A stretch of DNA of 64,000 nucleotides from Blastocladiella emersonii ATCC 22665 (GCA_025594325.1 JANHCV010000003.1:992001-1056000), one strand, 5' to 3'. Shown: positions 18,463 through 61,470, counted from the stretch's first letter. A program made the numbers and translations. The notes: a model not told the origin generated them from the sequence alone.

Positions 18463-19002
18463 ATGTCGACGAGAAAGCCCAAAGATCGATGGGATTACTT
18501 CCTTGGTCCCGGAGCGGACGAGCGACTTCTTGGGCGATACGTCCTTTCCATTCAACGGCGCCTCACTAGCGTGCAAACCTCGGCCAAAGACATTCCCAGC
18601 TCGCTTCGCGCCCAGATCGTGACCTTCTCGGCCTGCACCTTGATCTGCAGCATGAATGGAGCTCTCAAGGAAATGATGGAGGTCCTTGACGTGTTTGCCA
18701 AGCATCACCGCAATCTCAATCGTACTCCTCTCACAGGGGCGCGCGCAGCTTGGTCTACGTCCAAGCTGGACCAGTGGGCGACATCGGCATACATTGAGCG
18801 CGTCAGACTCGAATCTATGCGCTCACTGAGCCACGAACTGGACTACAAGCTTGACGAGCGGTACAAACTGGATCCGCACGTCGAGTCGTCAACTTATATG
18901 ACCCAGTGGCCGATGGCCAAGTTTGCTTTGACCGCGGCGGGCGTTTGCAACAAGGTCGACCAGCACCACGCTGTAGCCATAGCCCTTATTCATTGGCGCT
19001 GA
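18463..19002 (+). CDS. Orphan helical-family member A (intact, 179 aa, intronless)
   Basis: Open from ATG 18463 to TGA, with AATAAA at 19012. By-eye similarity to the ORF at 60880 (TSA..IP..AC.....MN..L..x18..LN..W) and to 23624-24029. Confidence 0.6.
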   Translation: MSTRKPKDRWDYFLGPGADERLLGRYVLSIQRRLTSVQTSAKDIPSSLRAQIVTFSACTLICSMNGALKEMMEVLDVFAKHHRNLNRTPLTGARAAWSTSKLDQWATSAYIERVRLESMRSLSHELDYKLDERYKLDPHVESSTYMTQWPMAKFALTAAGVCNKVDQHHAVAIALIHWR

Positions 19003-19080
19003 TGTTCATTCAATAAAGTTTCGAACCTCTTGAACCCGACTGTGGCCCTCTCCGCGTGCGACTCGCGAGGCGAGCAAGGA

Positions 19081-19133
19081 TGAAACGGCCGCGGTGGCCA
19101 TGGTCGCGACCAACCACGCGTCGCTCATCTCGC
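19081..19133 (+). repeat. Direct repeat copy 2 at the right edge of the 17-19 kb island
   Basis: TGAAACGGCCGCGGTGGCCATGGTCGCG....ACGCGTCGCTCATCTCGC, matching 16835-16883. Confidence 0.8.
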
Positions 19134-19287
19134 CCCTCGCTCGCCCTCGGACCACGGCAAGACGGCATGAAGTTGGTGGTGACCAGCAGGTTCTATTACC
19201 GCGACGATGATGGAGATGGTGGGGAACGCAAGATAGACAAAAACACAAAACTCTCTCTCTCTCTTCCGTGAGACGACGACGGCGGGT

Positions 19288-20818
19288 TTAGAGCGCCGCG
19301 ACCGCCGCAACGGCAACCGCCACGACCATAGCGGCCGCGGACGCGACAGCGCTGGAGGACGACGCGTCCGAGGCCTGGAGGTCCGACGACGACAGCGAGA
19401 CGCCGCCGTTATCCGCGGCGTTGCCGCCGGCCTGGCGACCGCCACTGACGGGGGTCGACGTGGGCGCAGCCGCGCCAGCGGGCGAGCCAGAGGACGCGGC
19501 AGACGGGGCCTTGCCGCCCTCGACCTTGTCGCCGGGGAGCGGGGCGGGGAAGATGTCGACGTTGAAGAGGGTCTGGCCGTCGGTCGAGACGGGGTTGCCG
19601 GTGCCCTCGGTGGCGGCTGCGGGGGCAGCCGAGGACGTGGTGGTAGCGGGCTCGTCGGGCTTCGGGTCGTCCTTCTTGGGCTCGTCGTCCTTGGGCGGCT
19701 CAGGCTTCGCGGGCTCCGGCTTCGGCTCGGGCTCCGGCTTCGGCTCGGGCTTCGGCTCGGGCTTCGGCTCGGGCTTAGGCTCGGGCTTCGGCTTAGGCGC
19801 GGGCGGCGGGGGCGCGGGGGCGTTGTTACCCGTGCGGTAGTTCTGGCCGGCGACGTTGCCCGCGGGGTTGTAGTTGCAGGCGAGGAAGACGTTGCCGCAC
19901 CCGGTGGCGGCGCCGCACCCGACGCGCGTGGACTGGGCCCAGACCATCTGGGTCCAGTGGCCGCCCGAGGGGCCCTCGCGCACCCACAGGCCGACGAGGC
20001 GCGAGATGGTGTTGACGTCGAGGCCGCCCGAGCCCATGGACAGGTTCTCGCCGTACGACCCGTGGCCCGTGTGGTCGAGCCCGCACCGCGCCGCGTTGGT
20101 CCGCGCGCGGTTCTCGGCAAAGGCCGCGAGGCCGCCGTCCCACGAGATCTGGTTGTTGACGCCGACCGAGGCGCGGAGGCTAGAGGGAGGGAGGGGAGGG
20201 GAAGTTAGCCGGTGATCAGAGCCGTGATCTCATCCCCAAGCGAGCACGTTGACGGTCCGGTGGGTGTGGATGGAGTGCTTGGGTGGCGCTGCTCCTGCTG
20301 CTCGGCACTCGCCGAGAAGAATAAATTCCCTCGTCCCTCATTCGCGGCGACGAGCACGACACGACACGGCACGGCGGCGCGATCGGCGAGCGAGGGAGGG
20401 CGAGGGGCGAGGCCGCGGGCGCGCATGAGCGAGTCCTGCAAGCCTCAGCCACAGGGCCGAGAGTGCTCGCGACGGCGTCGCAGCCTCCGCCCGCCCGCCG
20501 GCGCCGCCGCGTGCAACGCAAGTCCTGCAAAGGGACCGGGCCACGGACCACGAGGGCACGCTGTGAGCGCCAGCGTTCGCGGCGTCGAGAGGAGCTACGA
20601 GGAGGCAGCGGGCTATCGCAGTCGGCCGCGAAGCAAACGAGAAGCACCACATCCACCGGGCCTCGACATGTCGAGCGGGAGCAGAGCGTGTAGAGCGTGC
20701 CGTACCCGTTGTGCGAGGCGACAATCACGGACGCCGCGCCGCCGGGGAGCGCGGCCGAGACCGAGTTGGCAAGGGCCAGGAGGGCGAGGAGCGACAGAAG
20801 CGCGGACGACGTCGACAT
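19288..20818 (-). CDS. CAP/SCP/PR-1 (Pry-like) secreted protein with KPEP repeats and a probable GPI signal, 334 aa; complement(join(19288..20179,20706..20818))
   Basis: Signal peptide; spliced HNGLRA; GENL; GHWTQMVWAQSTRVGCG; FLACNYNPAGN; hydrophobic C-terminus AMVVAVAVAAVAAL. Confidence 0.9.
19715..19797 (-). repeat. 12-bp coding tandem repeat encoding (KPEP)n in the CAP protein linker
   Basis: Repeated GGCTTCGGCTCG units on the + strand, translating as PKPEPKPEPKPEP. Confidence 0.85.
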
Positions 20819-21394
20819 GATCGATATGTGCGAGTGTGGAGGGAGTAGGAACGGAGCCAGCCGAACGGAACAAGAAGGTGGAGGAGGCGGTGCAAGCGAG
20901 GGGCACCGGCAACGAGGACGAGGTCGGGGAGAGAGCGGCAGTCTAGAGGAAGCACGGCGTCTTCCGGTCTATGGTGTGCGTGTGGCGCGGCTGACGGAAC
21001 GATAGCGGCGTGAGGCGCAGACTGAAGAGAGAGCGGGAGCGGCGTCGGCGCAGGGCGCGGTCGGTGGCCGAGGGCGGTGGCGGCGGCGCCGCGGCTTGTC
21101 GAAATGATGTTCGGCCCCAGCCCAGGGCCGCAGAATTTTTGAGAATTTTCACTCGCGAACCTGATGCGTTTCATGATCCATCCAATCATCGCCCGCGGGC
21201 GTGCCCGCACGTGCGTGTCTCGCAGCGTGTCTCGCGCGGCGCCGAAAACCGCGGCCGGTGGACGACAGGGACCGCGTGGGCCTGCCGACCCGCCCTTCAC
21301 GTCGACCCACACCCTGACATCACGTCCGGGTCCAGATCCAAACCCATGCGCGTATGTATTTACTCGCGTCGTATCCCACCCTCCGCCTCCTCAA

Positions 21395-23553
21395 TCAGTC
21401 GTACCGCGACCGCTTGGCCTCGCGCCGGTCGTCCTCGTCGTCATCGCGGCGCCGCGGCTTGCGCGCCTGCGACATGAAGTCGTTGACGCCGAACACGTCG
21501 CCGGCGAACGCGGCTGCCGCGGCGGACGGGCCAGCTGCCGCCGGTGGTGGGGCCAAGGTGGACGACGACGACGCGACCTTCTCGAACTCGACGGGCCCGT
21601 CGCCGCGCGCGCTGCTGCCGTCGGCGCCCTGGAACCCGCGCCCGGCCGCGGGCTGGAACCGGTCCGTCTTGCTGAGCTGCTCGTACGCCGCGTTTGCGTC
21701 CGTTGCGCCGCCGTACATGTCCGAGTCGCCGCGCGCCGCGGGACGGTACACGGACGCGATCCCGGCGTGCGTGCCCGAGAACAGCGCGCTGTCGTACACG
21801 TCGTACGCTACATACCCGTGCAGTATCGGGTTAGTGATGGTGAGCCGCGGATGAGAGCGAGAAAGCGTACCCTCGTCGTCGCCGAACCCGGACCCGAGCC
21901 CCTCGCTCTGGTTGAACAGCCGCGAGTCGAACATGGCGTCCTTGGACACGGTCGGTTTGATGGCGCCGAGCGCAATCTTCTCCGACACGTCGCGGTCCGC
22001 CATGGTCTTGGCGTGCCGCGACTTGGCCTCGGCGCCCATGTGCGACATGCGGTACTCGCGCTGCAGCTCGCGGCGCTTCTCGCGGCGGAGCGCCTCGCGT
22101 TCGCGCGCGCCCTCGTCGTCCTCGTCGTCCTCGTCCTCGCCACCGGATCCCGCACCGCGCTGGTCGCCGCGGGTGTGCCGGCGGCCGCGACCCTCGGGCT
22201 CGGAACCCGAGTCGTACGACCGGTCGCGGCGGCCGCGCCCACGCTCGCTCGCGTCCTCCTCGTCGACGTCGTTATCGAAATGGTCGTCGCGGCCGCCGCC
22301 GGCGCCACCGAGCCCCGCGGGCCCGCCGCCGAACCCGGACCGCTCCTCGCGCGCCTGCTGCGCGAGGTTGCGCAGGCCCTCCTCGCGGAGCATGCGCTCC
22401 TTCTCAGCGATCTTCTGCTGCATGATGGCGCGCTGGCGGACCTCCTCGCGGGCGTGGCGCTCGGCGATCTGCATGGCCTCGGAGAACTGGGCGAACCGGT
22501 CGTTGATGACCACCTCCTGCAGGCCGCGGCCGTCGGCGGCGAGGCGCTTGTCGAGCGGGATCGTGTAACCCTTGGCGTTCTTCCAGTTGCTGATGCACGG
22601 CGGGATCTGCCACTCGTCGCGCTCCTTCTTGGTCAGCTTGCGCGGCGGCGAGTGCAACACGGGCGGCGGCGGCGACGGCGGGCCGGGCGGCAGCCGCTTG
22701 AACCCGAACTTGGGCGGCTCGAGCGGGTCCACGGGCATCTCGACCATGGAGATGACGCGCGTCTTGCCCTTGCGCCCGCCGTGCGACGTTGGCGTGTACT
22801 TGACTACGGTCGGCGCGCTCGCCTTGGCCCCACTCGTCACCACCGTCGACTTGAGCGACGACACCTTGCCCGACACGATCTGCTCGAGCGCGAGCCGCGT
22901 CTTCTCGGTCGTCGCCGCCACCTCTTCGGCCGACGGCTTCTTCCACGCCGCCGCCGTCTCGGCCGTGATGTCCATGGGCACCAGGTCCTTGTACTCGGCG
23001 AGCACCACCGCGTCGCTCGCGTGCCCGTACCGCGCCAGCGCGTCGTACCGCAGCTTGCCCTGCTCGTCGACCTGCAGCGCCACGGTCGTCGACGTCGCCT
23101 TCTACACGTGCGCGAACGAGGGCGCACGCCGTAAGCGAACAAACGGGGGTCACGATGCAGGCAAGCAGTGAGAACGAACGCACCGTCTTGTCGCGGCCCA
23201 TGTCGAGCGGGTACTGCAGCATGTGGATCTCGGGGAACGCGCCGCCGTCGCCGAAATCCTCGGCGCGCCGCGGCAGGTACCCCTTGCGCGCGCCGTACGG
23301 CGGCGGGCCCGCCGCCGCCTTGCGCTGCAGCGCCATGGACGGGGCGGCGCCCGCAGTTGCGGGGTTGGGAGCCGGATCAACGGGCGCCCGGAGCGGTGCG
23401 GCTGGCTCGTGTTTTGGTGCAGGAAGGAAGCTAGACGAGATGCGAACGGGCGGGACGCGAGCCGTCAGTCGCGGATGCGGAACGGGCAGAGTGCGTGCTG
23501 CATGGTGGCGGATTGGTTGCATGGAGTAATGTTCCTCACCTCAGCGTGGACAT
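21395..23553 (-). CDS. PRP45: Spliceosomal SNW1/SKIP/Prp45; exons 23540..23553, 23184..23430, 21871..23101, 21395..21807
   Basis: MSTLSFLPAPKH, PPPYGARKGYLPRRAEDFGDGGAFPEIH, IPPCISNWKNAKGYTIPLDKRLAADGRG, FDSRLFNQSEG. Confidence 0.96.
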
Positions 23554-23623
23554 GGTGATGCGGGGCAGAAGGGAAGGCGCGAAGCGAGGCGCCCGCTTCA
23601 AAGGTGAGCGGTTTACCTGCCAA

Positions 23624-24029
23624 TCACGTCACGCGAGTGGCGGAACCCGCTCCGTTGAGAGTGGCGATCCTTCGCGCCGAGCAACTGGCACTCGCTCGTA
23701 GCGGCTCACATGAACGAATGAAGCGAATGGACTCTATGCAACGCGTCATGCACTCTGGGAAGTAGGACTTGGTCCAGCTTGGGGCCTGAGAAACCTGGGT
23801 TTTGTCGCACATCTTGATCCGCCGGTTCAGCATCTTTAAAACGTCGCCGATGGACTCGAACATGGTTTCCAGCTCGGCCCGGCAGAGCGTCGCAAGTAAC
23901 TTGGCATCGTGGTGGATTGGAAGCGATTGCTGAGCTCCGGCAACCTTTTGGGCTCCTTTTGCCTCCTTGGCATGTGACGTTGCCCATGATCTTCCCCAAT
24001 AATTGCTTCGTGGTTGTCGATGGCGACAA
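23624..24029 (-). pseudogene. Orphan helical-family member B (frameshifted, no clear ATG)
   Basis: KQLLGK (one frame) then AQKVAGAQQSLPIHHDAKLLATLCRAELETMFESIGDVLKMLNRRI..APSW..CIESIRFIRS (next frame). Aligns by eye with member A (ERLLGR, AKDIP..ACTLICSMNGALKEMMEVLDVF, AAW..YIERVR..MRS). Confidence 0.45.
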
Positions 24030-24542
24030 GGAGCTTGAACCGGTACGGAGAACCAGAGCCCGCTTGAGGCGTCAAAGGCTTGGCGCGAGTAATGCATGTC
24101 GCCACTTCGTGAGCAATCCTTCGGGCAGCCTTCCCATCAAGCTCATTTCCGGTTCCGCTTGCGCGAGGGCGCATGTTTGACTGACGGCTCGGTCAACCGT
24201 ATAAATGGAGCAATTCGACCTTTTCTCGAGCCGTGGCTGATTACTCTTGATGCATTCATCCTCACAAGGCTCTCGCATTGCCATGTGTTCGTGGCTGGAC
24301 CGTCCCAGTGAGTCCTGCGGGCCGTGCAACTTCCACTCATGTCAGTCCTCATCTTATTTATTCACTCAGCGCTGTTAGAAGCGGACTCGGATCTGAAATG
24401 CATCCAGATCATCGTATAACCAGCAACTTTCGCCGTTGAACCAACAATTCTCCAGCGAGTTACTGACTCAACTTGAAATTATTACACGCTTAGCCGCATG
24501 TCATTGAAGTAGCTGAAGGCTCAATGCGTCATTCGTCCCGCC

Positions 24543-25248
24543 TCACGCTCGCCGAGGCGAGCGTGATCGACAGATTGATCGAGTGGCGCAACGCGAGGTG
24601 CCGCTCGCGTGACGCGATGCGCCAACCGGTCGAGGTCCCTCCACGCTCCGTGGCTCCGTATCCACGCCTAGATAACCAAGGTTCCTCAACGAAACCAAAC
24701 TTTCGGCATGGAGCGTAAAGTGCGCCCCCTCGTTCTGCATCGGGGGCTTACGGTCATCAAAGCTCAACCTTGCATGCCGACTCACGCTCACCAGTCCGAG
24801 CTTCGTCCCTGCACCGACACAAGTGAGGAGAACCGGATAATCGAGCATTGAGCGTCGCGGACGCAATGATATTGGTTTGAACTTCAAGATGAACAGATTT
24901 GTTGCAAACCTGTACTTGATTTTGAACTTGCACACGCGCAAATCGCATACTCGATGGCGGCGCTGAGCCGGACGACCAAACTTCGCCGAGTGCTTGAGAG
25001 CGGCTAGAATTTGCAGCGGTTAGTCGTCCATCGTCCAATTTATGCTTAAATTCCCACACTAACCAGGTCCTATGATCGTCTGCTCGTCCGAGCCGTGTCA
25101 CTGTTGCGGCGGACGCGTAAAGCGCTGCAAAACTCGCACCTGCCGGGACCGTGAAGCTTGATCGAGTCGGCGTCAGGCCGAGTTGTGCGCGTGTGGAGCA
25201 ATCAATGACGAGTTGGAGTACGCGTCCGGGCAGCCACGTAAGCGGCAT
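24543..25248 (-). pseudogene. Possible degenerate F-box/LRR-like gene
   Basis: N-terminal MPLTWLPGRVLQLVI resembles an F-box start (LP..V...I). A second frame gives an LRR-like LVSLRNLGYLGVD. A frameshift is needed to join them. Confidence 0.25.
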
Positions 25249-26343
25249 GGCGTCGATGGAAAGCTCGAGCAGAAGTGGACTGAGAAGCTGAGTGTCGCGA
25301 TCGTGACGAGTTGATGTCCGAAGCCACGACCAGCAGTTACTGAAGCTTAGTAGAGTGCAGCTCAAGTGCGATCCATGCCAGCTGCCGTGAGTGTGACACG
25401 CTGTATGAAGTTGCGGGGCGTGGAATCAAGGAGAGATCCCATTGCTGAAGACCAGCATGAGCTTTCGGCGATTCCGATAGATCCGCGACCCGCTGATCTG
25501 CCCGCTGATGGCCAAGTCGAGCAAGTATCGAGTGGCGAACCAGGCGTTCAACGGCAAGAGCTCCGGGAGCTGCTAAGGAAACCTTGTTCCAGCGTCGACG
25601 GCATGTTCAGCGAGCTTTCAGATCAGCGGCAGCGATGAGCTCGAATCGCATCTCGCGTTGAAGTGCACTTGGACGCGCGAATCAAAGAGGACGCGAGGCC
25701 GACACTGACACATTTTTAGCGAGTTACCGGTCACGGACGAACCGTTGCACCGGCCGCGAGCTGGACGCGCTCCCCAGATCATGGTCGAGCCCAAAGATCG
25801 GCTCTCGTGACAGCGATGAAGAGGCTGCAGCTTCGAAAACGAGCGGGGCAGCGGCAACCGAGTCGGGCGAAGCAAGATGTTGAGCAGCAAGTCTGCTCTG
25901 CGTAACGCAAGAAGGTGATTCAGGGCGGGCGGGGCCGATGACTGCGGAGGCGACCGTCGTGGCTCTCATCGAGTTGCGCATGTTTCCATCAGTGTGTTGC
26001 ATGAAGTTCATTGTGGTTTTATGAGGTGCAGTGGTGGTTGACGAGCAACGAGAGGAGCGGACCACCCGAGGAACGCGAGCGAGCTGCAACGTGATGTTCG
26101 AGGGGCCAAAGTAGCAACATACGCCGATCAAGGCCAAACTAGCAACTCAGAAACACCATGGTGGTTGCGCAGGAACACGAACTGTATTGAGTGGGGCAGG
26201 AACAGGGGGGAACACGCGCTCCAGGTATACACAGCACAGCTCGTCCTCTGACGACAGCGCGAACCACGCCGCCGCGGCGCGCACGAGATCGGGAGAAAAA
26301 CTTGAGCGAGCATGAGCGGCGATAGTCGGGGTCGAGAAGGCGC

Positions 26344-26673
26344 TTAGTCGAAGAGACCGAAGCCCATGTCGTCGTCCTCCTCCGACTCGGGCTCGGGCTC
26401 GGCCTCGGCGGCGGCGGGGGCGGCGGCACCACCGGCAGCGGGGGCACCGGCAGCGGCGACGGCGGCGCCACCAGCGGGGACCGAGGCGAGCTTGGTCTGG
26501 CCCTCGGCGATCACGTCCTCGACCGACTTGCCGGCGAGCTCGGACACGACCTTCTCGAGCTGCTCGACGTCGGCGTCGATGCCGACCGACGACAGGATGG
26601 CGGTGATGTCGGCGACCGAGGGGGCGGCGTTGCCACCGAGGACGGCGAGGAGGTAGGCAGCGATGTGCTTCAT
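26344..26673 (-). CDS. RPP2: 60S acidic ribosomal protein P2 (109 aa)
   Basis: [19 protein letters not shown] ... [13 protein letters not shown]-terminus. Confidence 0.97.
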
Positions 26674-31609: not shown

Positions 31610-31653
31610 GCGTTGCAAATATATGTCCATCGTAGCGATCCCCGCGCGACACA

Positions 31654-33225: not shown

Positions 33226-33260
<35 letters not shown>

Positions 33261-50700: not shown

Positions 50701-51506
50701 ACGGCGCGACACGCGTCGCAAGCGCCGGACTTGGCGCCGCCGCTCGAGCCCTTTAGCGCCTGCACGAGGATGTTGTGCTGCAGCGGCCGCGTCAGGTCGT
50801 ACGTGTACGAGAAGAAGAGGTCTCCCTGCAGAGCAATGGCCTGGAACGAGGCCATGAAGTAGGCTTCGTCGCTGCGCCGCGCCCACTTGACGAGCACCGG
50901 GTTCGCGATGGGAACGAGCCGGGTCTCGTCGACCCGCCGGAGCGAGTGCGGGCCGATGGTGGCGACCTCGACGCTCTGGACGACGGCGACAATGTAGTAC
51001 CCCTCGACGAACCGGACCACGCCTGCAGAACCAGTACAGGAAGGCACGCGTGTCAGTTAGAGGGGAACTCGCGCGAGTCAGCAGCGAAGGTGAAGCTTAC
51101 CCAGCAGCGCGTCACACGAGCAGATCTTGCGGACCGAGTCGTTGCCGTCGCCGAGCATCTTGAGGACCGAGGACACCTGGCGCCGCGTGTACAGGATGCT
51201 GTCGTCGTGGATGTGGAGGCCGCAATCGTCAGGCGTCATCAGCCGCACCGTCTCGGTCGAGCATGGCACGGGTGGCGGCGCCAGAGTGCGATCAAACTTG
51301 AGGATGCGGTACTGGCCATGCGGGCCTAGCCGCCCAACGGCGTAGATACGCTACGTTGATGAGGCGTGCGAGAAGTGAGCATCAGGCTCAGGGGCATACG
51401 CGAGTTGAGCTCCGCTCTCAACGGGAGCGACAAGCGATGCATGGACGAGGAGTTTGAAGGCTACCGTCGCCGTTTCATAGAGTTCGATCGCTGACAGATA
51501 TCGCAT
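47735..51506 (-). CDS. FIG4: PI(3,5)P2 5-phosphatase Fig4/Sac3 (multi-exon)
   Basis: IELYET, YRILKFDRT, LFFSYTYDLTRPLQ, IARRSRNFAGARFLRRG, VANEVESEQIV, SFVQHRGSIPLLWSQ, catalytic NCIDCLDRTN, HGDAIALQYGGS. Confidence 0.95.
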
Positions 51507-51816
51507 GGTCTCGAAGCGCGAGGGTGGTGGAGGCGTGCGGCGCAGCGGCGGCGCGACGCGCGAAGCCGGCAGAGTTCACGCCACCCCCGGTCACATGATA
51601 TCAAAACGCGTCTCGCACCGCGGTCGGTCCGCCTCTCGCGCGTGTGATGTGATGGCCGCGCTGATGGTTGAAGTGTAAGTAAGCCGAAGGAAATCACTGT
51701 GTTCGTTGATATCGATCCATTGCTTCCCTGACAACGGATCACGCGCGATGCATGCATGCATTCACGTTGATCGAACCGTGTCTTGAGGTCCGGGTACCCT
51801 CCCCAACTGCTCCTCC

Positions 51817-51865
51817 CTCAGAAGTCATGGCCCACTCTAAGCTCAGAAGTCATGGCCCATTCTAA
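51817..51865 (+). repeat. 25-bp tandem duplication spanning the start codon of family member C
   Basis: CTCAGAAGTCATGGCCCACTCTAAG followed by CTCAGAAGTCATGGCCCATTCTAA. Confidence 0.9.
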
Positions 51866-52336
51866 TCGAAAAAAGGCGGGGCGGGGCGCCACCCTCAGCA
51901 ACAGTGACAAGGCAGTCGCACCTTGCCGATGCACTCCTGGGTTCTTTCGCAACCCGCCCGAGACGGCGGAAGAACTGACGGGCTGGATCGCGTCCCTCAT
52001 CAACATCACGTTCGAGAAGTGCTCGGGCCAGCTCTGGGTGCTCGAATGCGCCCAAGGTTTCCTTGAGGAAGCGCCCTACGGTACTGGAACCAGCCCTGCT
52101 CGATCAGCGCGAAACGTAATCTGTTCGAGACCAGGCTTTGTCTCGCGCGTGCCCGCGTCGAGGCCTTGTATTCCCGTTTAAACATCCTCTCCAACGATTT
52201 CTACGCGGTTAAATGCGCTCTCGATGCGGCAGAGCCTCCCGTGACGGCTGAAGTCGCAGCGACCCAGCACTTTGAGATTGTTGAAGTCCCGCTTGTTGAC
52301 CGAGTAAACCGTTTGAATGCCGGTTGGATTGACTAA
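51852..52336 (+). pseudogene. Orphan helical-family member C (one frameshift near 52070)
   Basis: Second frame reads SALRYWNQPCSISAKRNLFETRLCLARARVEALYSRLNILSNDF, aligning with member G TAIWWRHLPVLSDVEKDTFAAEVQLMKVRVMDIYARIDILSLEF. First frame has IASLINITF, versus VATFMNYSL in G. Confidence 0.65.
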
Positions 52337-53020
52337 AAATGCGGCCGGAATACATGACATTGGTTACCGCAGCTGCTGTGAAGCAAGTCTCGTGGCCCTT
52401 GGCGTGAGGTGCGCGCTCGTTCGCCCCCTGAATCACCGCCTGCGAGCAGCCCGTCAACCGCTCCCACGGCCCACCAGCGGGTCCATACTTCGTGCTTCTC
52501 CCCATATCGTTTGACGGCCAGCATAACGCCATCCCGTTGCCCGAGACATGGCGGCGTGAGACTCGCTGCGAGACGCGTCTCGAAAACACGTGACGCGTTT
52601 GGTCGCGCTGGAAACGCGTCGCACGACGCGCGCCGCGCACGGCGGGCGGGCAAAGATCGAGCGATGCTGTGACTTGCGGCAAACCGCGTTTCAGGCGAGC
52701 GAAATGCTTCACGCACGTGGTAGCTGTCTTCGGTGGCCTCGCTGATGGTAGGGCCGTCCCAGCGGCCCGCGGTCCAGCTAGATCGCGCCATGGAAGCTGT
52801 GCGCGATCGTGAGACGTAGCGAGGCACTCAGAGCTTGCGCTCGCAAGTTTATGTGAATGGGTAGCGTGGAATCGCTCATCACTGGCGGCAGGGAGGACGC
52901 GAGCGTCGCGTTGGACTTGAAGCGATCTGGGAGAGTAACTCTTCTTCAGCACTCCGTTCCGTGCGTTCAAGGGGAAGCCGATACTTGGCACAGAATCGCG
53001 GTCTATATTGATTCTCCGCC

Positions 53021-56000
53021 TCAACTGCACGCGTCCTCCTCATCGTCCGTGTCGGGGCCCTCAACGAACCCCACCGCAGCCACGAGCTCGTCGTCCGGGA
53101 CGAGGACCTCGGCCACGGACTCGAGCAGGTCGACGACGAGCGCGCGGTTGAGCGCCTCGACCTGGAGCATGGCGAAGGTCGCGCGGAGCCCCGCGGCGGC
53201 GTTGGACTTGCCGAGGATCCGCGCCACGACGTCGGGCAGGGCGGCCTCGAGCAGCTCGCGCGCGCGAGCCGCCGTCGCGGCCATCTCCTCCTCGTCCGAG
53301 CCTGCGCTCGCGTTCCCGTTCCCGTTCTTCTTGTCGCCATCGTGCTGAAGCTGCCCGTTCGGCCACACGTTGTCGATGACGCCGTGCTCGAGCGCGCGCG
53401 CGAAAAAGGCCGGGTCCGACACCGTGTCGACGAGCGCGCCGAACCGTGTCTGGATGTGCGTCGCGAGCGTCGGGCGCAGGACCTGCGTGACCACGCCGAA
53501 GATGCGCGCGCGGATCGTCCCGTCGAGCGCGAACACGTGCTTGAGGACGGCGAACGACGCCTCGATCAGCGCGTCCGCGTTGTCCGACGACAGCGCCGCG
53601 GCGGCAGGTTCGGCGGCGGTCGTGGAGGCGATACTTGCGGACGATGCGGGTGGTGTCGCGACCGTGATGGCGGTCGTCGACGCAAGAGTCGCCGGTTGCT
53701 GCTGCTGAGACGAGGACCCGAGCGACGACTGGATCGACGACGCGGACGCTGAAATGGACGAGGAAGCCGTGGACGCAAGCGACGAGGTGAGGGCGACCGA
53801 GTGCTGGATCGTCGACTGCGCGACCGCGAGGGACCCGTGCGCGAGCGAGCCGACGCCCGACGCGATGGCCGCGGGCGCCGTCTGCACTTTGGCGAACAGC
53901 TGCTGGCTCGACGCCGTGAGCGCCGTGGACGACGACGCGAGGAACTTGGACGTGTTCGGGATCACGTTGCTGAGCGTCTCGGCCGAGCCCTTGCGCGAGA
54001 GCAACTGCTGCTGCTGGAACGTCGGCGACATGAGCCCGCCCTTCTCGCCGGCAGCCGTGATGGCCGCGACACCCGAGCCGCTGCCCATCCCCGCGCCCGA
54101 TGCGGCGGCCGCCGCCGACAGGTTCATGGACGAGACCTTCTTCTTGAACTTGGACGTGACCATCTTCGACCCGGACGTCCACCCGCCGCGCGACTCCTTG
54201 TTGGTGAGGCCCTTGAACACGTTGCGCACGCCCTGCACCGACTTGGCCGCGCCCATGCCGACGTTGGCCTTGAGTGACTGCGCCGAGCTGGCGATCCCGC
54301 CCAGCCGCTTGTTGCCGCCGTTGCTCGGGCTGCGCGTCACCGTCGCCGAGGTCGAGGGCACTGCGAGCGACGACGACGATGACGAGGACGAGGACCGGTT
54401 CTGGTTCATCGTCGCCGTCACGGCCTCGCCCGACAGCAGCGGCTCGAGCGCCATGAGTTTGCACTGGATCTGCGACGCGAGCGCGGCGAGGTGCGGGACG
54501 CGGTCGGCAGCGGCGTTCTCCTCCATGGCGTCATTGAGCAGCCGGTCGAGCACGACCATCTGCATCTGCATCGTGTTCATGGAGCTCGCGACGAAGGCGA
54601 GATCCATGGCGCACACGCCCTCGACGAGCATCGCGTGCTTGGCGGCGAGCGCCTCGACGGGGTCCGCGTCGGGCCCGCCGCGCCGCACGCGGTCGTACGC
54701 CGAGACGGACGCGGCGCGCGGCCGGTCGCCGCGCACCCGCGGGTCGCGCGGCATGGCGTGCAGGAGCCGCGGCACGCTCATCCGGGCGCGCTCGGCGGCG
54801 GCCACGCGGGCCGCGAACGCCGCGACGTGCGGCGCGAGCCGGTCCGCGACGAGCTTGACGGCGGGGTCGAACAGCGCGGGTGTCGGGTCGAGCACGATGC
54901 GCTCCTCGAGCGACGCGCAAATGTCGTGCGGCAGGACCGGGTGCGGGCAGGCAAAGTACAGGTCGAAGCAGTCGTACGCCTCCTGCTGCACGGCGGCACG
55001 CGACGACGGGTCCGCCGGGTCCAGCAGCGTCGTCAGCAGACGGTAGTTGCTGGCCGCGTCGAGGAAGGCGAGCAGGTGGTCGAGCCGCTGCTGCGGCTGC
55101 TGCGGGAGCGAGCGGAGGTACTCGGCGAAGGCGCGCGACCGCGTGTCCGAGGCACGCACCGTGTCGAGCGTCCACGACTCGTACGGCGGCTCGGACGGGT
55201 CAAAGTCGAGCCCGCTGTCGTCCACGTCGTAGTCGTCCATGGCGCGGCCGCGCACCGGTGCACCGCGCTCGACGAGGGTCACGTCGCGCGGGATAAAGTC
55301 GACGAGTACCTCCTCCTCTTCGCTACCGGTCGCGAGACGGCTGACGACAGCCTCCTCGACGGCGAGCGCCATGGCCTCCATGGATGCGGCTGGCGACGGG
55401 TGCTCGGGCGTCGTGGGCGGCGACGGGAGTGCTGACTGGTTCGTGACCGTCGGCGACGCGGGAGCGGGCATAACGGTCGACGGCTCGGAGAACTCGCCGG
55501 CCGCCGGCGCGAGTTCACGCGTCTCAGGGATCGACGCGAGACTGATCTCGGAGCCGAGCATCTCGTGCGACGCGGCGAGCGGTGCAGGAGCAGCGCTAGT
55601 CTCGGGCGCGACGACCGTCGGCTCGGGTTCCGGGTCGGCGACCTCGAGCTCGAGCCACAGCTCCGTGACGGGCTTGAGGTCGTCGCCGTCCGTGTGACCG
55701 AGGTCGTAGAGCGGGACCCAGCCGACGTGCGGCAGCTCGGCGAGCGGGACAATGGCCTCGGCAACGAGCGCAAACTGGTTCCCCGACGCAGACGACCGGC
55801 ACAGCTGCAGGATCACGGTCTCGGTGTCGACGACGGGCGACTTGATTGGGCTACACGGAAGCGAGAGACCGGTGAGCTGCCGTTCTGTCCGCACGAAGCG
55901 GTCTCCGAGAAACACGTACAAGGCGCAGTTGTGGTCAAACACGAGCGACGCAGGCGTCGACCCCTCGGGGCCGACAGCGTGCGCGTCGGCGCGGCGTTCC

Positions 56001-57565
56001 TTGTCGCGTAAAAGCACCGTGAAGAAGAACACGAACCCGCCGTCCTCGACAGCCGCCACGAGCCGGTCGTCGTGCGACCGCGTCTGGATGACGCGCACGT
56101 TGAGGTCTTTGCGGTACACGGCGACGCCGCCGCGCGCCGACGCCGCGATGGGCACCGGCTCCTCGAGCGCCGTGACGAGCAGCCCATTCACGAAATGCGG
56201 CGCGCTGAGCATGGTGACGACTGGCCAGATGACGGCGGTGCACATGATCTCGACGAGGATCGAGTAGACGAGCGGGTTGCGCGCGTCCTGTGCGGGGAGG
56301 AACCCAGCGAGCAGGCGGCGCGCGACACGCCGGATCGCCGCCGCGTGGTGCCGCGGGTCAATGGCGCGCGCGAGGTCGCTGCGCGGCGACTGCGACACGT
56401 ACTTGGCGACGGCCGCAGCCGCGTCGTCTGGGTCGTCGATGGCCGCGTGGCCCATGCGCAGGTGCGCGACGATATCCGACGCGGCACGCGTCGCGCCGTC
56501 GACGAGCAGGTCGCTCGCACCGCGCGCGTGCAGGCGGAGCGCGGCCTTCATGATGACCGTGTCGAAGGCGGTCGCGACGGACCGCGGGAACACGTCGCGG
56601 CCGGGACCCGGTGCGGCGACCGAGGGCACGAACCACGAGCGGACAAAGTCGCGCAGCACGTAGTCGCGCAGCTTGGCGACGGCTGTGTCGAGGGCGCCGC
56701 CGTTGTCAATCGACAGCGCGAGCTGCTCGTAGGCGGGAGCGCTCGCGGTGGCGGCCGCGGCGGCGAGGTTGGGCGGGATCGGGAGGCCCTGCGACGCGGC
56801 GTAGGCGGCGGCCGCGGCAGCCATCTCGGCGGCGGCGTAGTCGGCCGACTTACGGCCCGCGTACGAGGGCACGGTCGGGGTGGGCGGGACCGACGACGCG
56901 GCCTGTGACTGCGACTGCAGCTGCTGCTGGTCGGAGACGAACGAGTGGCGGCGGACCAGCGACTTGCGGCGCGACGAGCTGCGCGAGAGCCGGCGCTTGG
57001 GCGCCGAGAGTTCGACGGGCGACAGCAGGTCGCCGTCGCGGGCGTCGGCGTGGTCAAAATAGAGGAAGATGAGGCCGGCCGAGAGGGCGGCGCCCGACGC
57101 GAACAGCGCCGTGGGCAGCAGCAGGCGCGGGAACGACAGCATGAACACGATGACCATGGCGACGCCGAGAATGCGGCCGCGTGTGCCCTTGGGCAGCGCC
57201 GGCATAAGCTGCGGCGCTGAAAGCGCGAGGTCGCGGTCCGTGCCGGTCGTTGCGGTGGCGGCGGTGCCATCGGCCGAGTCCCAGATCCCGGGAAAGTCGT
57301 GCAGGACGAGCAGCTCGCGCTCGGCCTCGTCGTTCGACGGCGGCGCGCTGACGACAATGTCGGGCGATGCCGTGCGCGAGACTGCGGCTTCATTGTCGAC
57401 GGCGGCCGTGGCGACGACAGGTTCGGGCTCGACTCGTGGCGGTAGCGGCGGCGGCGCCACCTCGACGGGCGTTGGCGCGAGGAGCACGTCGATGGCGGGT
57501 TCGCCGCCGACCTCCATATGGCCGGACGGCAGTGTAGGCGGTACGTCAACGGCAGCAGTCGCCAT
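53021..57565 (-). CDS. Mdm1/SNX13-14-25-like membrane protein: TM-PXA-(C2-like)-RGS-PXC, no PX domain seen (1514 aa)
   Basis: Two N-terminal TM helices; PXA LRDYVLRDFVRSWF..LVYSILVEIMCTAVIWPVV; RGS-like LDTVRA..AFAEYL..LLAFLDAASNYR; PXC LIEASFAVLKHVF..VWPNG..NRALVVDLLE. Confidence 0.8.
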   Translation of the reverse strand: MATAAVDVPPTLPSGHMEVGGEPAIDVLLAPTPVEVAPPPLPPRVEPEPVVATAAVDNEAAVSRTASPDIVVSAPPSNDEAERELLVLHDFPGIWDSADGTAATATTGTDRDLALSAPQLMPALPKGTRGRILGVAMVIVFMLSFPRLLLPTALFASGAALSAGLIFLYFDHADARDGDLLSPVELSAPKRRLSRSSSRRKSLVRRHSFVSDQQQLQSQSQAASSVPPTPTVPSYAGRKSADYAAAEMAAAAAAYAASQGLPIPPNLAAAAATASAPAYEQLALSIDNGGALDTAVAKLRDYVLRDFVRSWFVPSVAAPGPGRDVFPRSVATAFDTVIMKAALRLHARGASDLLVDGATRAASDIVAHLRMGHAAIDDPDDAAAAVAKYVSQSPRSDLARAIDPRHHAAAIRRVARRLLAGFLPAQDARNPLVYSILVEIMCTAVIWPVVTMLSAPHFVNGLLVTALEEPVPIAASARGGVAVYRKDLNVRVIQTRSHDDRLVAAVEDGGFVFFFTVLLRDKERRADAHAVGPEGSTPASLVFDHNCALYVFLGDRFVRTERQLTGLSLPCSPIKSPVVDTETVILQLCRSSASGNQFALVAEAIVPLAELPHVGWVPLYDLGHTDGDDLKPVTELWLELEVADPEPEPTVVAPETSAAPAPLAASHEMLGSEISLASIPETRELAPAAGEFSEPSTVMPAPASPTVTNQSALPSPPTTPEHPSPAASMEAMALAVEEAVVSRLATGSEEEEVLVDFIPRDVTLVERGAPVRGRAMDDYDVDDSGLDFDPSEPPYESWTLDTVRASDTRSRAFAEYLRSLPQQPQQRLDHLLAFLDAASNYRLLTTLLDPADPSSRAAVQQEAYDCFDLYFACPHPVLPHDICASLEERIVLDPTPALFDPAVKLVADRLAPHVAAFAARVAAAERARMSVPRLLHAMPRDPRVRGDRPRAASVSAYDRVRRGGPDADPVEALAAKHAMLVEGVCAMDLAFVASSMNTMQMQMVVLDRLLNDAMEENAAADRVPHLAALASQIQCKLMALEPLLSGEAVTATMNQNRSSSSSSSSSLAVPSTSATVTRSPSNGGNKRLGGIASSAQSLKANVGMGAAKSVQGVRNVFKGLTNKESRGGWTSGSKMVTSKFKKKVSSMNLSAAAAASGAGMGSGSGVAAITAAGEKGGLMSPTFQQQQLLSRKGSAETLSNVIPNTSKFLASSSTALTASSQQLFAKVQTAPAAIASGVGSLAHGSLAVAQSTIQHSVALTSSLASTASSSISASASSIQSSLGSSSQQQQPATLASTTAITVATPPASSASIASTTAAEPAAAALSSDNADALIEASFAVLKHVFALDGTIRARIFGVVTQVLRPTLATHIQTRFGALVDTVSDPAFFARALEHGVIDNVWPNGQLQHDGDKKNGNGNASAGSDEEEMAATAARARELLEAALPDVVARILGKSNAAAGLRATFAMLQVEALNRALVVDLLESVAEVLVPDDELVAAVGFVEGPDTDDEEDACS

Positions 57566-58039
57566 GACGAGTTCAGTCGAGGGCCAAGGCCAAAAATATG
57601 CGAGATGCGGGGGAGGAGGGGGAGAGGGGGCGTCGCCACTCTAACCTAGCGGCAGCTATCGGTGTGGGCCGGCCGCTCGCGTTGATGCAGCGGGTGTTGG
57701 CGAGGCGAGGCTGCAGGACGGCGACTTGCCAGGCAGGGTGCGATGGCGCAGCGAGGAGAGAACGGAACGGAGGCGTATGATGGCCTCGACGTTGCGCTCC
57801 TCGTCGATGCTTCTCGGCCGTCGTCGCGGTGGTTGATACGTGATACGTTGAGGTTCGCCAGTCCGTCACCAGGCGGAGAGAGAGCGAACGCCGCCCGCAG
57901 CGGGCCTGGCTGGCCTGGGCGAACGAGGAGGGCGAGCGAGAGAGGCGTTTGTGGCGCCGACGGCGGCGCGCTGTGTGGCGTCGGCGCGAGGCACCATCCA
58001 CGCACCATCCACGAACGCCTCGCCGCTCCACTCCTCTCC

Positions 58040-58376
58040 TCCCTGCCTGCTTCTTCCTCAATGAAATGGTCGATGCGACGATGTATACTCCATGCAAACG
58101 AGCGAACCTGATTACTTCATCGCGACTTCGACGATGTCGGTTTCTTTCTTGCTCTCTGTATCGTTCAGCGTCCGAACCCGAGCTGTTCCACGATGGCCGA
58201 GACCGTGGCGCTGAAACTTGAGCTCGTATACACAGCAACGCTCGCAGTCTGATGATGATGTTGAGGAGGTAATCGCAGTTGGAAGCCGCAGCTACAGACC
58301 TTGCAAAGTGTGAGGTGAACGCGTCGACTGCCCTGAGGAGTTGACGTTGCACGGTGTAGTAATGGAACGCGTTCAT
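58040..58376 (-). CDS. Hypothetical short helical ORF, possible distant family member (5' part of track ORF 57573..58376)
   Basis: ATG at 58376; YLLNIII and QVSAPRSRPSW weakly resemble member C LINIT and member B QVSQAPSW. Confidence 0.25.
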
Positions 58377-58734
58377 TGGCGTAATCGAGCCGTTGGCTAT
58401 GATTGATGCAGCCCTGTTCAGAGCTGGTCTAGAGTGTCAAGGGGTACGCGGTCACGTTCGATAAGCGCGCCGCCGCTGAGGTCTACGGGGTGCAAGATAT
58501 GGTCATCAGCGACGTCTTTACGTATGTCTCCACGGCCGTGCACCTTGTCGATTGACACTCGCGGAGGAGCACTGCATCGCGCCAAAGTGTGACAAGGGCT
58601 CGCCTAGCTGTTTCGCGTGAACGCCGTTTCGACTCATCGGTGAGCGCCGCTGCCAAACATGATGGCCGCAACCGTGAACCTAGCGAGCGGTCCGATGCGG
58701 GTGCGGCTTTCGCGGGGACGCGAACATCAGCAGG

Positions 58735-59138
58735 GGTGACATCAGACGCCGCGGGTCATGTGAGTGGCGCAACGCGTCCATTTGACTCTGACTCGACTAC
58801 CCGTCTCCCCTCGCTGGGTTTGTTTGACGAATACGGTATCTGAGAAAACGTATGGTCTCTTTGACACCTTGGCCATCGTCACGGCCGATGTCTCTCAAGG
58901 CCACGACGAGGTCGGCTCGCAATACCGCGCTGACTGTTGTGGTGAGCGCGACAAACTGCATCACACTCTTTGGTGCGCTTCGTGAGTGTTCATTGGGCGA
59001 TGGATCTGCGTGAGCCGGTTTAACCATGGTGCGATCACACCTCCCGCTCGTTAGACTTCGACTTGATGGCTTTGCCTGAATGCTCCATGAACGACCATGG
59101 ATGCATGCATGCGCCTGTACGCGAGGCTTGACGGTCAA
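58735..59138 (-). pseudogene. Orphan helical-family member D (degenerate, closest to member B)
   Basis: VSAVLRADLVVALRDIG..ETIRFLRYRIR versus B LATLCRAELETMFESIG DVLKMLNRRIK. After a stop and frameshift, KWTRCATHMTRGV versus B SWTKSYFPECMTRCI. Confidence 0.4.
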
Positions 59139-59315
59139 AGCTGGGATCGTTTTGTGTTACATTGCCATGCCAATGATATGCTGGAGTAGCTCGCTCCACC
59201 CTTCGGAGACGTGGAACAGCGCGCGCCCTCGCCGATTGTGTATGGCTGAGGCTTGAACCATTTGCGATCCTTGGGTCGCAGCGCATTCACGCTCTCCCGA
59301 CTGCCGCACGTGTCC

Positions 59316-59797
59316 ATGTCAACACCGCAAACTACAGGTTCAAGGCGGTCTTCCAACACACCGCCGCGCCCGGTTGATGATGCATCAACTCGCGACCACG
59401 AGCGTGAGCGCAGTCTTTATCGGCGCCTTCGCCGCTAGGGGCTCCCTCATCAGCATCGCCGAATACAATGATCTGGTTGGCCGGCTCCTTTCGTGTTCTC
59501 AACCGTGACATTCGCCGCATGGCCACGTCCAATCTTTCTCGCGCGCATCTTTGCAGGCACGCCCTGGCAACTCCTGTTTTCTGCATGTGCGGCGAGCGGG
59601 TGAGGAGTTTGCAGGCTCAACTGGACGATGTATTTGACAGACTGAGCGTCATTCGCGATGATGGGGCGCTGGAGTCTCGGTCGGCTCGGCACCAGGTCCG
59701 CCAGGTGCGCCGTGAAGTCAAGGGGATCCAGGAAATGGCTCGGGGTCTGCAGTCGTCGATGCATGATAGGTTCTCCTTGTATTCGTTGTCAATTTGA
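59316..59797 (+). pseudogene. Orphan helical-family member E (two frameshifts, near 59410 and 59485)
   Basis: Starts ATGTCAACACCG like member F. VFIGAFAARGSLISIAEYNDLVGR is colinear with F IFEGARKITVCLERTNLLAGFIGR. C-terminal RHALATPVFCM..RV..LDDVFDRL..IR..L..SAR.Q.RQ..EV.G..EM matches F. Confidence 0.7.
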
Positions 59798-60025
59798 TTG
59801 TGTGAGTCGGATGGCGGAACTTGTTCTCTCGCGGAGCTTGAAGGTTGATGGATGGTATGATGACTCGAGCTTTGATCCAGTGAACGTTGGCGTTTGCTGA
59901 GGAGTGAGCTCGCTGAAGGAAGTGGCACGCCCCCCGCCGTCGCGAGTGGCTGGGACCGGAGCGGGGGCCAGTCGCGACGAAGTGGAGACATGCACTCTCG
60001 CTCTCCCCGGCCGTCACACAAAAGC

Positions 60026-60494
60026 ATGTCAACACCGAACGCAGAGTGCCCAGAGCAGGCTCTCGGCGCGTCATCGCTCCCATCAGAGCGCGTCTCGACT
60101 CGCAGGCTCAAGCTCGAACGCGAGATCTTTGAGGGCGCCAGAAAAAATCACAGTCTGCCTTGAAAGGACGAACCTCCTCGCGGGATTTATCGGCCGCCAC
60201 TTCGTAAAGGGACTCAAGCCCTGGCTTTTCCGCAAGGACGAGCTCACCAAGCACGCCTTGGCCACTACGATCTTTCGCATGTCCAGCATCCGGGTCGAGC
60301 ATTTACACCTGCTTCTTGACGACGTCCTCGAAAGACTGGACACGATCCGCCCCAGCAAGGTACTAGACAACCATTCGGCTCGACGCCAGCTGCGCCAGCT
60401 GCTCCATGAAGTCGTGGGCATGCACGAGATGGTCGCGGACGCAGAGTTTCTATATTCGGCAGACGTATACGACCTCTACTCGTTGTATTCGTAG
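60026..60494 (+). pseudogene. Orphan helical-family member F (one extra A in an A6 run at 60142-60147)
   Basis: Removing one A fuses MSTPNAEC..EREIFEGARK to ITVCLER..KHALATTIFRMSSIRVEHLHLLLDDVLERLD..LDNHSA..EMVADAEFLYSADVYDL, which aligns with member G (RIEGHLER; KDTFAAEVQLMKVRV; LDPAEA; AEFIRGDVSAL). Confidence 0.7.
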
Positions 60495-60879
60495 TGGCTG
60501 CACAGAGACAAGATAGAATGATTCAGCAGCCTTCTTGCAAGCAGCTGAGGCGAGATCGGCAATACGCTCGTGATGGCGGAGCTGATGGGGCCCGCGATAC
60601 CCCGTGAGCGTACACACGTTTTTGCGGCACGTCCCGAACAGTTCAGCGCTCGTGCTAGCACTTTGGCGCGCATAAAAGCGAACAAAAGAAACGTGCGCGG
60701 TATGTGACCTGCTACAACTCATTTGCGGCGGTGAGGTGTCGGCAACGTTGTTCAGATCGCATGCATGGTACGTTGTGATGGACCAGTCCCGCATTGCAAC
60801 AAAGACTTTGCCAACGAGTGGGCTTGGCCGGTTGAATTGGTGACATGCGCTCTCGCTCTCCCCAGCTGTATTGACAATC

Positions 60880-61470
60880 ATGGAACGCCAGCCTGACGAC
60901 TGTTTCTCAGACATAGACATCAACGAGTTATTGTACCTGCTAGATGTCACAAACATGGCCAAGTTTGAGATGGATCTCTTGATTTCGTCCTGGACCCTTG
61001 ACGAGCTCGCAACTTCAGCCTGTCCTCGCGTTCCTCGTTGTTCGTCGCGTGTGCTGATTATGGCGTGCGCCGTCGCTACATTCATGAACTATAGCCTTGA
61101 CTCGCTTGCGAGAATCGAAGGGCATCTCGAACGTTACGACCATCGCCTCAACCCGGCTACGGCCCCTATCATGAACCCGACCACGGCCATTTGGTGGCGA
61201 CACCTCCCGGTCTTGAGCGATGTTGAAAAGGACACGTTCGCCGCCGAGGTTCAGCTCATGAAAGTCCGAGTCATGGACATTTACGCGCGAATCGACATCC
61301 TGTCCTTGGAGTTTGACGCTCTCTGCGCAGTCGAGGCGACCCTGGATCCAGCGGAGGCGGCATCGCGGATGCACGAGCTGGGCCTGAAATCGGCCAAGCT
61401 GTACGCGATGGCTGAGTTTATCCGTGGAGATGTGTCTGCGCTGAGAGCGCATATTTACAATTCTAATTGA
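60880..61470 (+). CDS. Orphan helical-family member G (intact, 196 aa, intronless)
   Basis: Open from ATG 60880 to TGA. Amphipathic helical pattern. Homologous to C, E and F, and more distantly to A. Confidence 0.7.
   Translation: MERQPDDCFSDIDINELLYLLDVTNMAKFEMDLLISSWTLDELATSACPRVPRCSSRVLIMACAVATFMNYSLDSLARIEGHLERYDHRLNPATAPIMNPTTAIWWRHLPVLSDVEKDTFAAEVQLMKVRVMDIYARIDILSLEFDALCAVEATLDPAEAASRMHELGLKSAKLYAMAEFIRGDVSALRAHIYNSN

Follow-up and report, generated by a model that had tools for sequence, protein, structure and literature searches.

Background

Taxonomically restricted (orphan) gene families that turn over by birth and death have in common a lack of outside homologs, small sets of tandem and dispersed paralogs, intact copies beside pseudogenised ones, short and simple proteins, and atypical codon usage. 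We describe a small family that we think probably belongs to this class in the early-diverging flagellated fungus Blastocladiella emersonii ATCC 22665, within a 64,000-nucleotide stretch (hereafter the window) that spans contig 15:992001-1056000 (GCA_025594325.1 JANHCV010000003.1) of the published assembly, which was built from HiFi reads and polished with Illumina reads (PMC9730499). Genome searches covered 32.65 Mb on 21 contigs. A first-pass annotation of the window had proposed six to seven mutually similar, intronless open reading frames (ORFs), labeled A to G, some intact and some frameshifted. The reading that we favor is a small orphan family of short helical proteins to which G and C belong securely and E and F less certainly, A may be a still more distant member, and B and D are chance ORFs. 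Such a pattern is ordinary for lineage-specific genes. As expected of an orphan family, no outside homolog and at least two significantly similar paralogs were found; the locus differs from other such families in a 25-point gap in third-codon-position GC content (GC3) to conserved genes and in a leader kept at 86% identity, and otherwise in nothing essential.

Two better-known classes of fungal gene bear a likeness to the family. Four-helix-bundle cell-death domains of the HeLo/HELL/MLKL type and HET genes are likewise lineage-variable and encode helical bundles of ~200 amino acids (aa), but in the present family there is no Pfam HeLo or HET match, none occurs among the top fold matches, and there is no N-terminal membrane-inserting helix, partner NLR or amyloid motif. 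Toxin-antidote drivers of the wtf and Spok types are also fast-diverging, copy-number-variable and lineage-restricted, with pseudogenes. However, wtf products are multi-pass membrane proteins and Spok products are large proteins with nuclease and kinase domains, neither of which was seen in the family by Pfam searches or sequence inspection.

Secure members and their distribution in the genome

Similarity was measured by tblastn of each copy against the window and by all-versus-all blastp of 266 reading-frame pieces from the low-GC islands in which the ORFs lie. Two links within the window were significant, namely G with C (31% identity over 67 aa, E 2e-5) and E with F (47% identity over 83 aa, E 7e-12). 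ORFs A to G are located where the first-pass annotation placed them, and A and G are open from an ATG, but they do not form one family in which each copy is significantly similar to the others: B and D are unrelated, while A, E and F are tied to G marginally and by context. The reference copy and its closest relative in the window are as follows, with positions counted from the first nucleotide of the window unless a contig is named.

60880-61470, plus strand: G, an intact 196-aa ORF with an ATG start, the family reference copy
51852-52336, plus strand: C, a degraded G-type copy, with its N-half in the ATG frame and its C-half (52067-52333) in the -1 frame
51817-51866, plus strand: 25-bp tandem duplication (23/25 identical), read from the sequence, which contains the start codon of C

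G has a GC content of 0.57, 0.40 and 0.66 at the first, second and third codon positions (GC1/2/3). Its best match elsewhere in the genome is an intact paralog of 166 aa at contig 17:2005843-2006340 (33-40% identity over 160 aa, E 1e-21/1e-22). A C-terminal remnant of a G-type gene lies at contig 4:368446-368694, and two G-type pieces lie on contig 15 at 957770-958030 and 959945-960151. These remnants score 70-117 bits against the family profile, and C scores 74.5 bits. A genome-wide query with F returned E as its sole match, a query with A returned A alone (a singleton), and a seven-row profile found no additional copies in the genome. Eight of the ten family pieces fall within 957-1,053 kb of contig 15 (about 100 kb). 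Judged by sequence similarity, G, C, the contig-17 paralog, the contig-4 remnant and the transposon-split copy described below are secure members.

The N-half of C, KCSGQLWVLECAQGF, pairs with RCSSRVLIMACAVATF of G in the frame of ATG 51852. From 52067 onward the C-half (KRNLF...RARVEALYSRLNILSNDF...) follows the -1 frame; the shift falls somewhere in the interval from about 52060 to 52109. In C, both frames cannot be joined by a GT-AG intron without loss of a conserved block. As read from the assembly, C was apparently killed by a frameshift. Its first ATG (51827) opens a 12-codon, out-of-frame upstream ORF (uORF) before ATG 51852.

The sequence motifs on which the first-pass annotation had grouped the ORFs fared unevenly. 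The block shared by C and G is real (LYSRLNILSNDF / IYARIDILSLEF), as is that of A and G (AC-5-MN-2-L-16-LN, with equal spacing in both), and the block of F and G is one residue off. The block assigned to B and D, on the other hand, has 8 versus 16 residues between IG and RI[RK] and is without statistical support.

The contig-15 copy upstream of the window, at a distance of 32 kb, is one gene that an element of 1,904 bp (958026-959929) interrupts. Perfect terminal inverted repeats of 19 nt (CATCGCAAAACCTGCAGCA) bound this element, and the target duplication is 2 bp long, CA in this gene and TT at a copy on contig 2 (1257812-1259680) with which the element shares 98% identity. Another copy is found at contig 21:1709100-1710901, and longer forms occur, for example at contig 6:706325-712179; all 35 candidate places in the genome were scored, and these include the ~6-kb forms. 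From its sequence, we identify the element as a non-autonomous DNA transposon and a deletion derivative of the ~6-kb element. Pfam matches were absent from the transposon ORFs within reach. When joined, the flanks of the interrupted gene still contain stops. A family member that holds a transposon 98% identical to its sister copy has the look of a dated death event.

The E-F-G array and its leader

Upstream of G lie two further ORFs, E and F, and a short element precedes the start codons.

59316-59797, plus strand: E, paralog of F; the ATG frame ends at stop 59436-59438 and the conserved C-part (59408-59794) is in another frame
60026-60494, plus strand: F, paralog of E; the ATG frame ends at stop 60161-60163 and the C-part frame is open from 59901 to 60491
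59979-60014, plus strand: F copy of a 36-nt leader element, 11 nt before the ATG of F, with an ATG (59990) in frame with that of F and a pyrimidine tract
60834-60869, plus strand: G copy of the 36-nt leader element, 10 nt before the ATG of G
59296-59327, plus strand: E copy, a degenerate leader with the shared start (ATGTCAACACCG), 72% identical to 60006-60037

E, F and G follow one another head-to-tail, with 710 and 855 bp from one start to the next. The leaders of F and G are identical at 31 of 36 positions (86%), their local DNA alignment stands at z=11 against shuffles, and this is the sole DNA similarity between the F and G units. Because F and G share this leader, the E-F-G array is most likely a product of local tandem duplication. 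E and F both begin with ATGTCAACACCG, and their N-terminal ATG-frame segments are similar (Smith-Waterman score 44 versus 21+/-4, reached by 0/1000 shuffles). By sequence they form a secure pair whose proteins appear to have diverged from G almost beyond detection.

Searching 174 kb with the leader (nhmmer) located it before E, F and G only, plus one weak match (E 0.026) at contig 15:987500-988123; this place, with a weak protein piece, was rejected as an extra copy, as it is not low in GC and its translation is junk. The 22-nt core of the leader has two exact copies in the genome, at F and G. It was discarded as a genome-wide marker of the family, given that, of its eight matches at up to 3 mismatches, just the F and G copies stand in front of family ORFs. 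Two identical near-matches to the core are inverted with respect to each other on contig 5 (357201-357222 minus and 496312-496333 plus, 139 kb apart); their downstream sequence is identical, the GC content of the region is 0.57-0.63, and they belong to some other repeat. A 21-nt inverted pair around G (60834-60854 / 61443-61463) was also set aside: we estimate that 4.1 kb would contain about one such pair by chance, and one of its arms falls within coding sequence.

The ATG of the G leader (60845) opens a 9-codon uORF that ends at 60874, and the pyrimidine tract ends in CAG, which could equally be a splice acceptor. With this upstream ATG and tract, the leader may subject the whole E-F-G array to common regulation. 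The one unusual point about the array is that this non-coding leader is kept better (86%) than the proteins behind it. An extension of this idea, that E-F-G is a fast-diverging or de novo-born Blastocladiella-specific cluster under common post-transcriptional control by the leader, with coding sequences free to diverge, strikes us as rather improbable. If it were true, leader control could serve stage-specific translation, as of stored zoospore mRNA.

The frame changes in E and F were compared with sequencing reads. Four read runs (X1-X4), all from one sample that is perhaps the source of the assembly, hold positions 57900-61800; X3 and X4 are 454 DNA libraries by their adapter and linker tags. 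Logan contigs of X1 (depth 33) and X2 (depth 132) span the region without difference and X3 agrees, while the low-depth X4 differs at three places, two of them substitutions (58985 and 61421) and the third an extra A (60538). Since the read-derived contigs are identical to the assembly, the frame changes of E and F are in the DNA. The first-pass claim that the breaks are real and not assembly noise therefore stands for E and F as to the DNA, although the change in E need not be a lesion, and for C it is read from the assembly.

E, and possibly J (a further locus described below) and F, could instead be intact genes with one short intron, and we consider this a serious alternative to pseudogenisation, if the less probable of the two. 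The switch of frame between the conserved N- and C-parts comes at the same relative place in E as in F. E has a 50-nt candidate intron at 59404-59453 with canonical GT-AG ends (GTGAGC...CTCCCTCATCAG) whose removal gives a 143-aa ORF with both conserved parts, and J has a 59-nt candidate (GTGCGG...AG). Short GT-AG introns do occur here, as in the SNW1/SKIP-like gene of the window (88 nt, GTGCGT...TGTAG, 23095-23182 minus). However, GT-AG pairs that restore the frame are common by chance, at 8-20 per locus; in F, GCGAGA stands at the site homologous to the donor of E and the alternatives are poor; and G, A and the contig-17 paralog are without an intron at that place. F is more likely broken than spliced, judging from its donor site. 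The first-pass description of the copies as intronless and frameshifted is not supported for E, given its frame-restoring candidate.

Possible distant relatives and ORFs that do not belong

Three ORFs of the first-pass set remain, all of them outside the E-F-G array.

18463-19002, plus strand: A, an intact 179-aa ORF, possibly a very distant member
23624-24097, minus strand: B, a non-member, probably a chance ORF in intergenic DNA
58735-59138, minus strand: D, a non-member, probably a chance ORF in intergenic DNA

A (GC1/2/3 = 0.56/0.45/0.66) and G match each other reciprocally at E 1.2-1.7. A profile built from the secure members alone gives A a score of 7.8 bits (P 1.1e-4), which 1/2000 shuffles reach, and A aligns to it co-linearly over 95 columns (hmm 46-140) that include the AC...MN...LN block and the VR and LDP positions. 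A natural background was formed from 3,928 reading-frame pieces taken from 174 kb of this genome. There A ranked third among non-members with E 0.67, and its neighbors in rank were Cys/Pro-rich false positives. These two background matches of 7-9 bits (window 26142-26510 minus and contig 15:1057493-1057903 minus), short, Cys/Pro-rich and matched to the C.RVPRCS block, were dismissed. On balance the profile alignment tips us slightly toward A as a possible very distant member of the family.

In the same background a locus termed J (contig 15:964407-964888) has a G-like C-half in another frame, with E 0.039 among the 3,928 pieces. Its start, MSTEPRAT...ERKVLAG, is like those of E and F (MSTP...LLAG) and of A (MSTRKPK...ERLLG), and J is probably a further broken copy of the family. 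With the profile extended by A and J, the scores of E and F were reached by 6/2000 and 24/2000 shuffles, and both align at a common co-linear position (hmm 81-150); this likeness of E and F to G-type proteins is marginal, at P about 1e-3 to 1e-2. Smith-Waterman comparisons with shuffles gave weak links (P 0.01-0.03) for 7 of the 18 pairs tested between A, E, F, G, J and the contig-17 paralog, and for none of the 7 pairs with B or D.

B and D showed no similarity in any test, whether pairwise, profile, shuffle or background (P 0.27-0.5), and their GC1/2/3 is flat (0.54/0.54/0.61 in B and 0.59/0.53/0.52 in D). Without similarity or codon periodicity, they are ruled out as members. The sequence comparisons taken together suggest that E/F and A are probable to possible distant relatives of G and that B and D are not members.

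These marginal statistics could also be read as a sign of several unrelated orphans: G-type and E/F-type genes would be independent families, A an unrelated singleton, and the likeness that of any amphipathic helical proteins. We give this alternative substantial weight, though well short of even. An hhalign comparison of E/F with the family gave P 0.18, and another comparison was likewise without relation; E and F rank 51-60 of the 3,928 background pieces, with A at the E value given above; the genome searches with A and F found nothing outside A itself and the E/F pair; and embeddings place A near FAT-like helical repeats, not near G. What opposes this alternative is the leader that F and G share at an equal distance from the ATG, the head-to-tail order of E, F and G, the fact that E, F and A all align co-linearly with one set of profile positions, the distribution of low P values among the 18 and 7 pairs, and J, which joins an N-terminus like that of E, F and A (MST...ER..LAG) to a G-like C-half.

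The protein and its proposed function

No family in Pfam reached its cut-off with these proteins. Searches found no homolog of G, A or F in 5.8 billion clustered proteins, none of the family profile among 1.84 billion representatives and none in PDB sequences; no relative of the family was found in IMG/VR viral contigs and none of G in JGI metagenome contigs; and an exact look-up did not find the ORF products in the protein collection. In the collections searched there is no homolog outside this genome, which agrees with the earlier view of a lineage-specific family.

An AlphaFold2 model of G from a four-row alignment predicts a helical bundle (mean predicted local distance difference test, pLDDT, 77.7; predicted template modeling score, pTM, 0.72), with long antiparallel helices at 59-93, 117-157 and 160-197 plus an N-terminal one at 17-40. 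A single-sequence model of A (pLDDT 43) was unusable. Foldseek searches with the G model (PDB, BFVD and ESM Atlas) and exhaustive VIA-align comparison returned generic bundles alone (E >=0.06, TM <=0.46, Z <=9.5), which is below the noise level stated by the tool for helical proteins (about Z 13), and no BFVD viral fold matched G at E <=0.001. The first-pass annotation, which recognized no known domain, agrees with the Pfam and fold searches alike. Among long antiparallel helical bundles, such as designed 3-helix bundles, PA28/REG-alpha, F-BAR and Borrelia PFam12/BBA65-66 surface proteins, the model of G shares the three long helices (VIA-align Z 7-9.5, best Foldseek E 0.07), but sequence identity is 4-15% and no family stands out. 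With scores below noise and no outstanding family, functional inference from these matches is unjustified. Atlas embeddings gave nothing for G (0.80) and a weak FAT-repeat lead for A (0.93, low recognition 1422). The assignment of A to FAT-domain helical repeats (PF02259) was rejected, there being no Pfam FAT match at E up to 1 and no large PIKK gene near A.

The N-termini are polar or acidic (MERQPDDCF, MDDFDPEQG, MSTRKPKDR) and have no hydrophobic h-region (judged by eye). The same kind of inspection revealed neither a signal peptide nor a membrane segment in G, A and the contig-17 paralog, and the longest hydrophobic run is ~12 residues. The family protein would be about 110-200 aa long, soluble and all-helical, forming an elongated antiparallel bundle according to the model, and in the cell it would most likely act as a non-enzymatic binding or scaffold module.

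A further reading, which starts from the first-pass annotation, takes the family for effectors, allorecognition loci or selfish toxin-antidote elements shaped by diversifying selection. Lineage restriction, local tandem arrays, copy-number turnover and strong divergence between neighbors are frequent in such systems. Yet no positive evidence for them emerged: Pfam found no HET, HeLo, NACHT, kinase or nuclease domain, the fold matches are generic bundles below helical noise, neither a signal peptide nor a membrane segment can be seen, the hydrophobic core stretch is short, nonsynonymous differences lie below synonymous ones, so that positive selection is not indicated, and the paralogs are old rather than recently diversified. 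We regard this explanation as very unlikely, and the family is not evidence for effectors, drive or allorecognition.

Age and turnover of the family

In the paralog pairs, the proportion of differing synonymous sites (pS) is 0.54-0.65 and that of nonsynonymous sites (pN) 0.26-0.44, with pS > pN in all, including G versus the contig-17 paralog (0.65 > 0.43); because synonymous divergence is saturated, pN/pS is qualitative only. Saturated synonymous sites also mean old duplicates in a family that is not young, and the substitution pattern indicates that the duplicates were constrained as proteins for part of their history. The earlier characterization of the family as rapidly evolving is not borne out by these values. 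Its birth-and-death character, by contrast, is upheld: intact G and the contig-17 paralog exist beside frameshifted C, the transposon-split copy and the truncated contig-4 remnant. The family grows by local and regional duplication, with its pieces clustered on contig 15, and loses copies via frameshift, transposon insertion and truncation. What it documents is orphan-gene turnover in an early-diverging flagellated fungus.

These ORFs may be, or may once have been, protein-coding, to judge from pS > pN, coding-like GC at the codon positions and the confident model of G. Several points weigh against the orphan-family reading, among them the qualitative nature of pN/pS and the marginal statistics of A, E and F given above. 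ORF length alone is weak evidence, as 32% of shuffled islands yield an ATG ORF of at least 179 aa. There was no RNA run among the runs that hold the region and no expression evidence of any kind. The protein collections were without even the conserved 1,514-aa protein of this genome, such that the sampling of close relatives may be poor, and a family restricted to this genome in our searches could be one restricted to an under-sampled clade. The proposed function, finally, comes from a generic fold.

Another possibility, which we think unlikely, is that the family arose de novo in this lineage out of intergenic DNA and was duplicated afterward. No homolog in the collections searched, a base composition like that of non-coding DNA, short, simple, all-helical proteins and the ease with which long ORFs arise in island DNA are all in keeping with such an origin. 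The synonymous saturation, however, speaks for a family that is not young, the bundle is modeled with good confidence from 4 sequences, and poor sampling of the clade may be why no homologs are seen.

Low-GC islands and base composition

The mean GC content of the window is 0.672, and windowed GC falls below 0.62 in only four stretches.

17701-19300: low-GC island that holds A
23401-26400: low-GC island I2, which holds B
51101-53100: low-GC island that holds C
57901-61800: low-GC island I4 (no strand assigned; GC 0.575), which holds D and the E-F-G array

Windowed GC and GC3 confirm that the ORFs are confined to low-GC islands, as first noted. This confinement is partly circular: the four islands are the four long gaps of the window between high-GC3 genes, and these genes and their spacers constitute the islands. 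Short, ordinary intergenic spacers in the window also have a GC content of ~0.60. GC3 is 0.62-0.73 in the family versus 0.91-0.95 in conserved genes, and the coding-like order GC2<GC1<GC3, which B and D lack, is shown by G, A, E, F and the contig-17 paralog. The family genes share the base composition of non-coding DNA and therefore escape whatever drives GC3 up in conserved genes. From this low GC3, low or condition-restricted expression may be inferred. Annotators should be warned that gene finders trained on GC3 will miss or mis-model such genes.

Island DNA is single-copy and unique in the genome, and a repeat or transposon nature of the islands was thereby ruled out. Repeat-induced point mutation (RIP), for which TpA/ApT above 0.89 and (CpA+TpG)/(ApC+GpT) below 1.03 were taken as criteria, was likewise ruled out by dinucleotide indices as the source of low GC and fast divergence, with island values of 0.44-0.48 and 1.14-1.28, respectively. 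The islands are also not depleted of CpG (observed/expected 1.09-1.25).

Were the islands relics of foreign or mobile DNA (a virus or transposon) with the ORFs as its decaying genes, then their GC content 10 points under that of the genome, the atypical codon usage and the real transposon inside one family copy would find an explanation. Against this stand the single-copy nature of the DNA, the absence of significant terminal repeats flanking the copies, of transposase or viral domains (Pfam), of an IMG/VR relative and of a viral structure-model match, and a GC content equal to that of ordinary short spacers (about 0.60); the transposon was inserted into the copy and is not its carrier. We hold this origin to be highly improbable, and the foreign-DNA and RIP ideas are contradicted by the sequence data. 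The low-GC patches of this genome are better described as long spacers with lineage-specific genes than as foreign or RIP-mutated DNA.

The pattern of low-GC orphan ORFs looks genome-wide and not special to the window. Ten low-GC ORFs on contigs 4 and 15 did not reach a Pfam cut-off, and none was akin to the G family. The gene just beyond the window end has no similarity to the family, and two reading-frame pieces there are without a Pfam match. Beside the contig-4 remnant lies a larger low-GC island (contig 4:360691-365060) with ORFs of 625, 473, 289 and 232 aa; these have coding-like codon-position GC, and none reaches a Pfam cut-off. An inverted segmental duplication on contig 15 (727213-728085 plus and 751825-752811 minus, ~24 kb apart, with neighbor ORFs at 728365-728892 minus and 751109-751633 plus) carries two pairs of low-GC ORFs that are without a Pfam match and unrelated to the G family. 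In one of the pairs, the first 50 residues are identical (MGVGLARRLQLP...).

Two minor observations concern the edges of islands in the window. A direct repeat of ~55 nt (94% and 87% in two blocks; 16835-16886 / 19081-19136, also 16899-16936 / 19277-19314) flanks a 2.25-kb segment that contains A and its island. Both copies read on the minus strand as ATGGCCACCGCGG... (MATA(V/A)VS), which is the start of gene 15558-16874, and the 5' end of this gene seems to have been duplicated at the far side of the island of A. At the right edge of I2, positions 26336-26670 are without a tRNA or Rfam match, and copies with 76-95% identity recur on contigs 2, 18 and 16 as well as in a distant part of contig 15, the match on contig 2 being in two blocks ~320 nt apart. 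By these matches the segment resembles a conserved 5' portion of some multi-copy gene.

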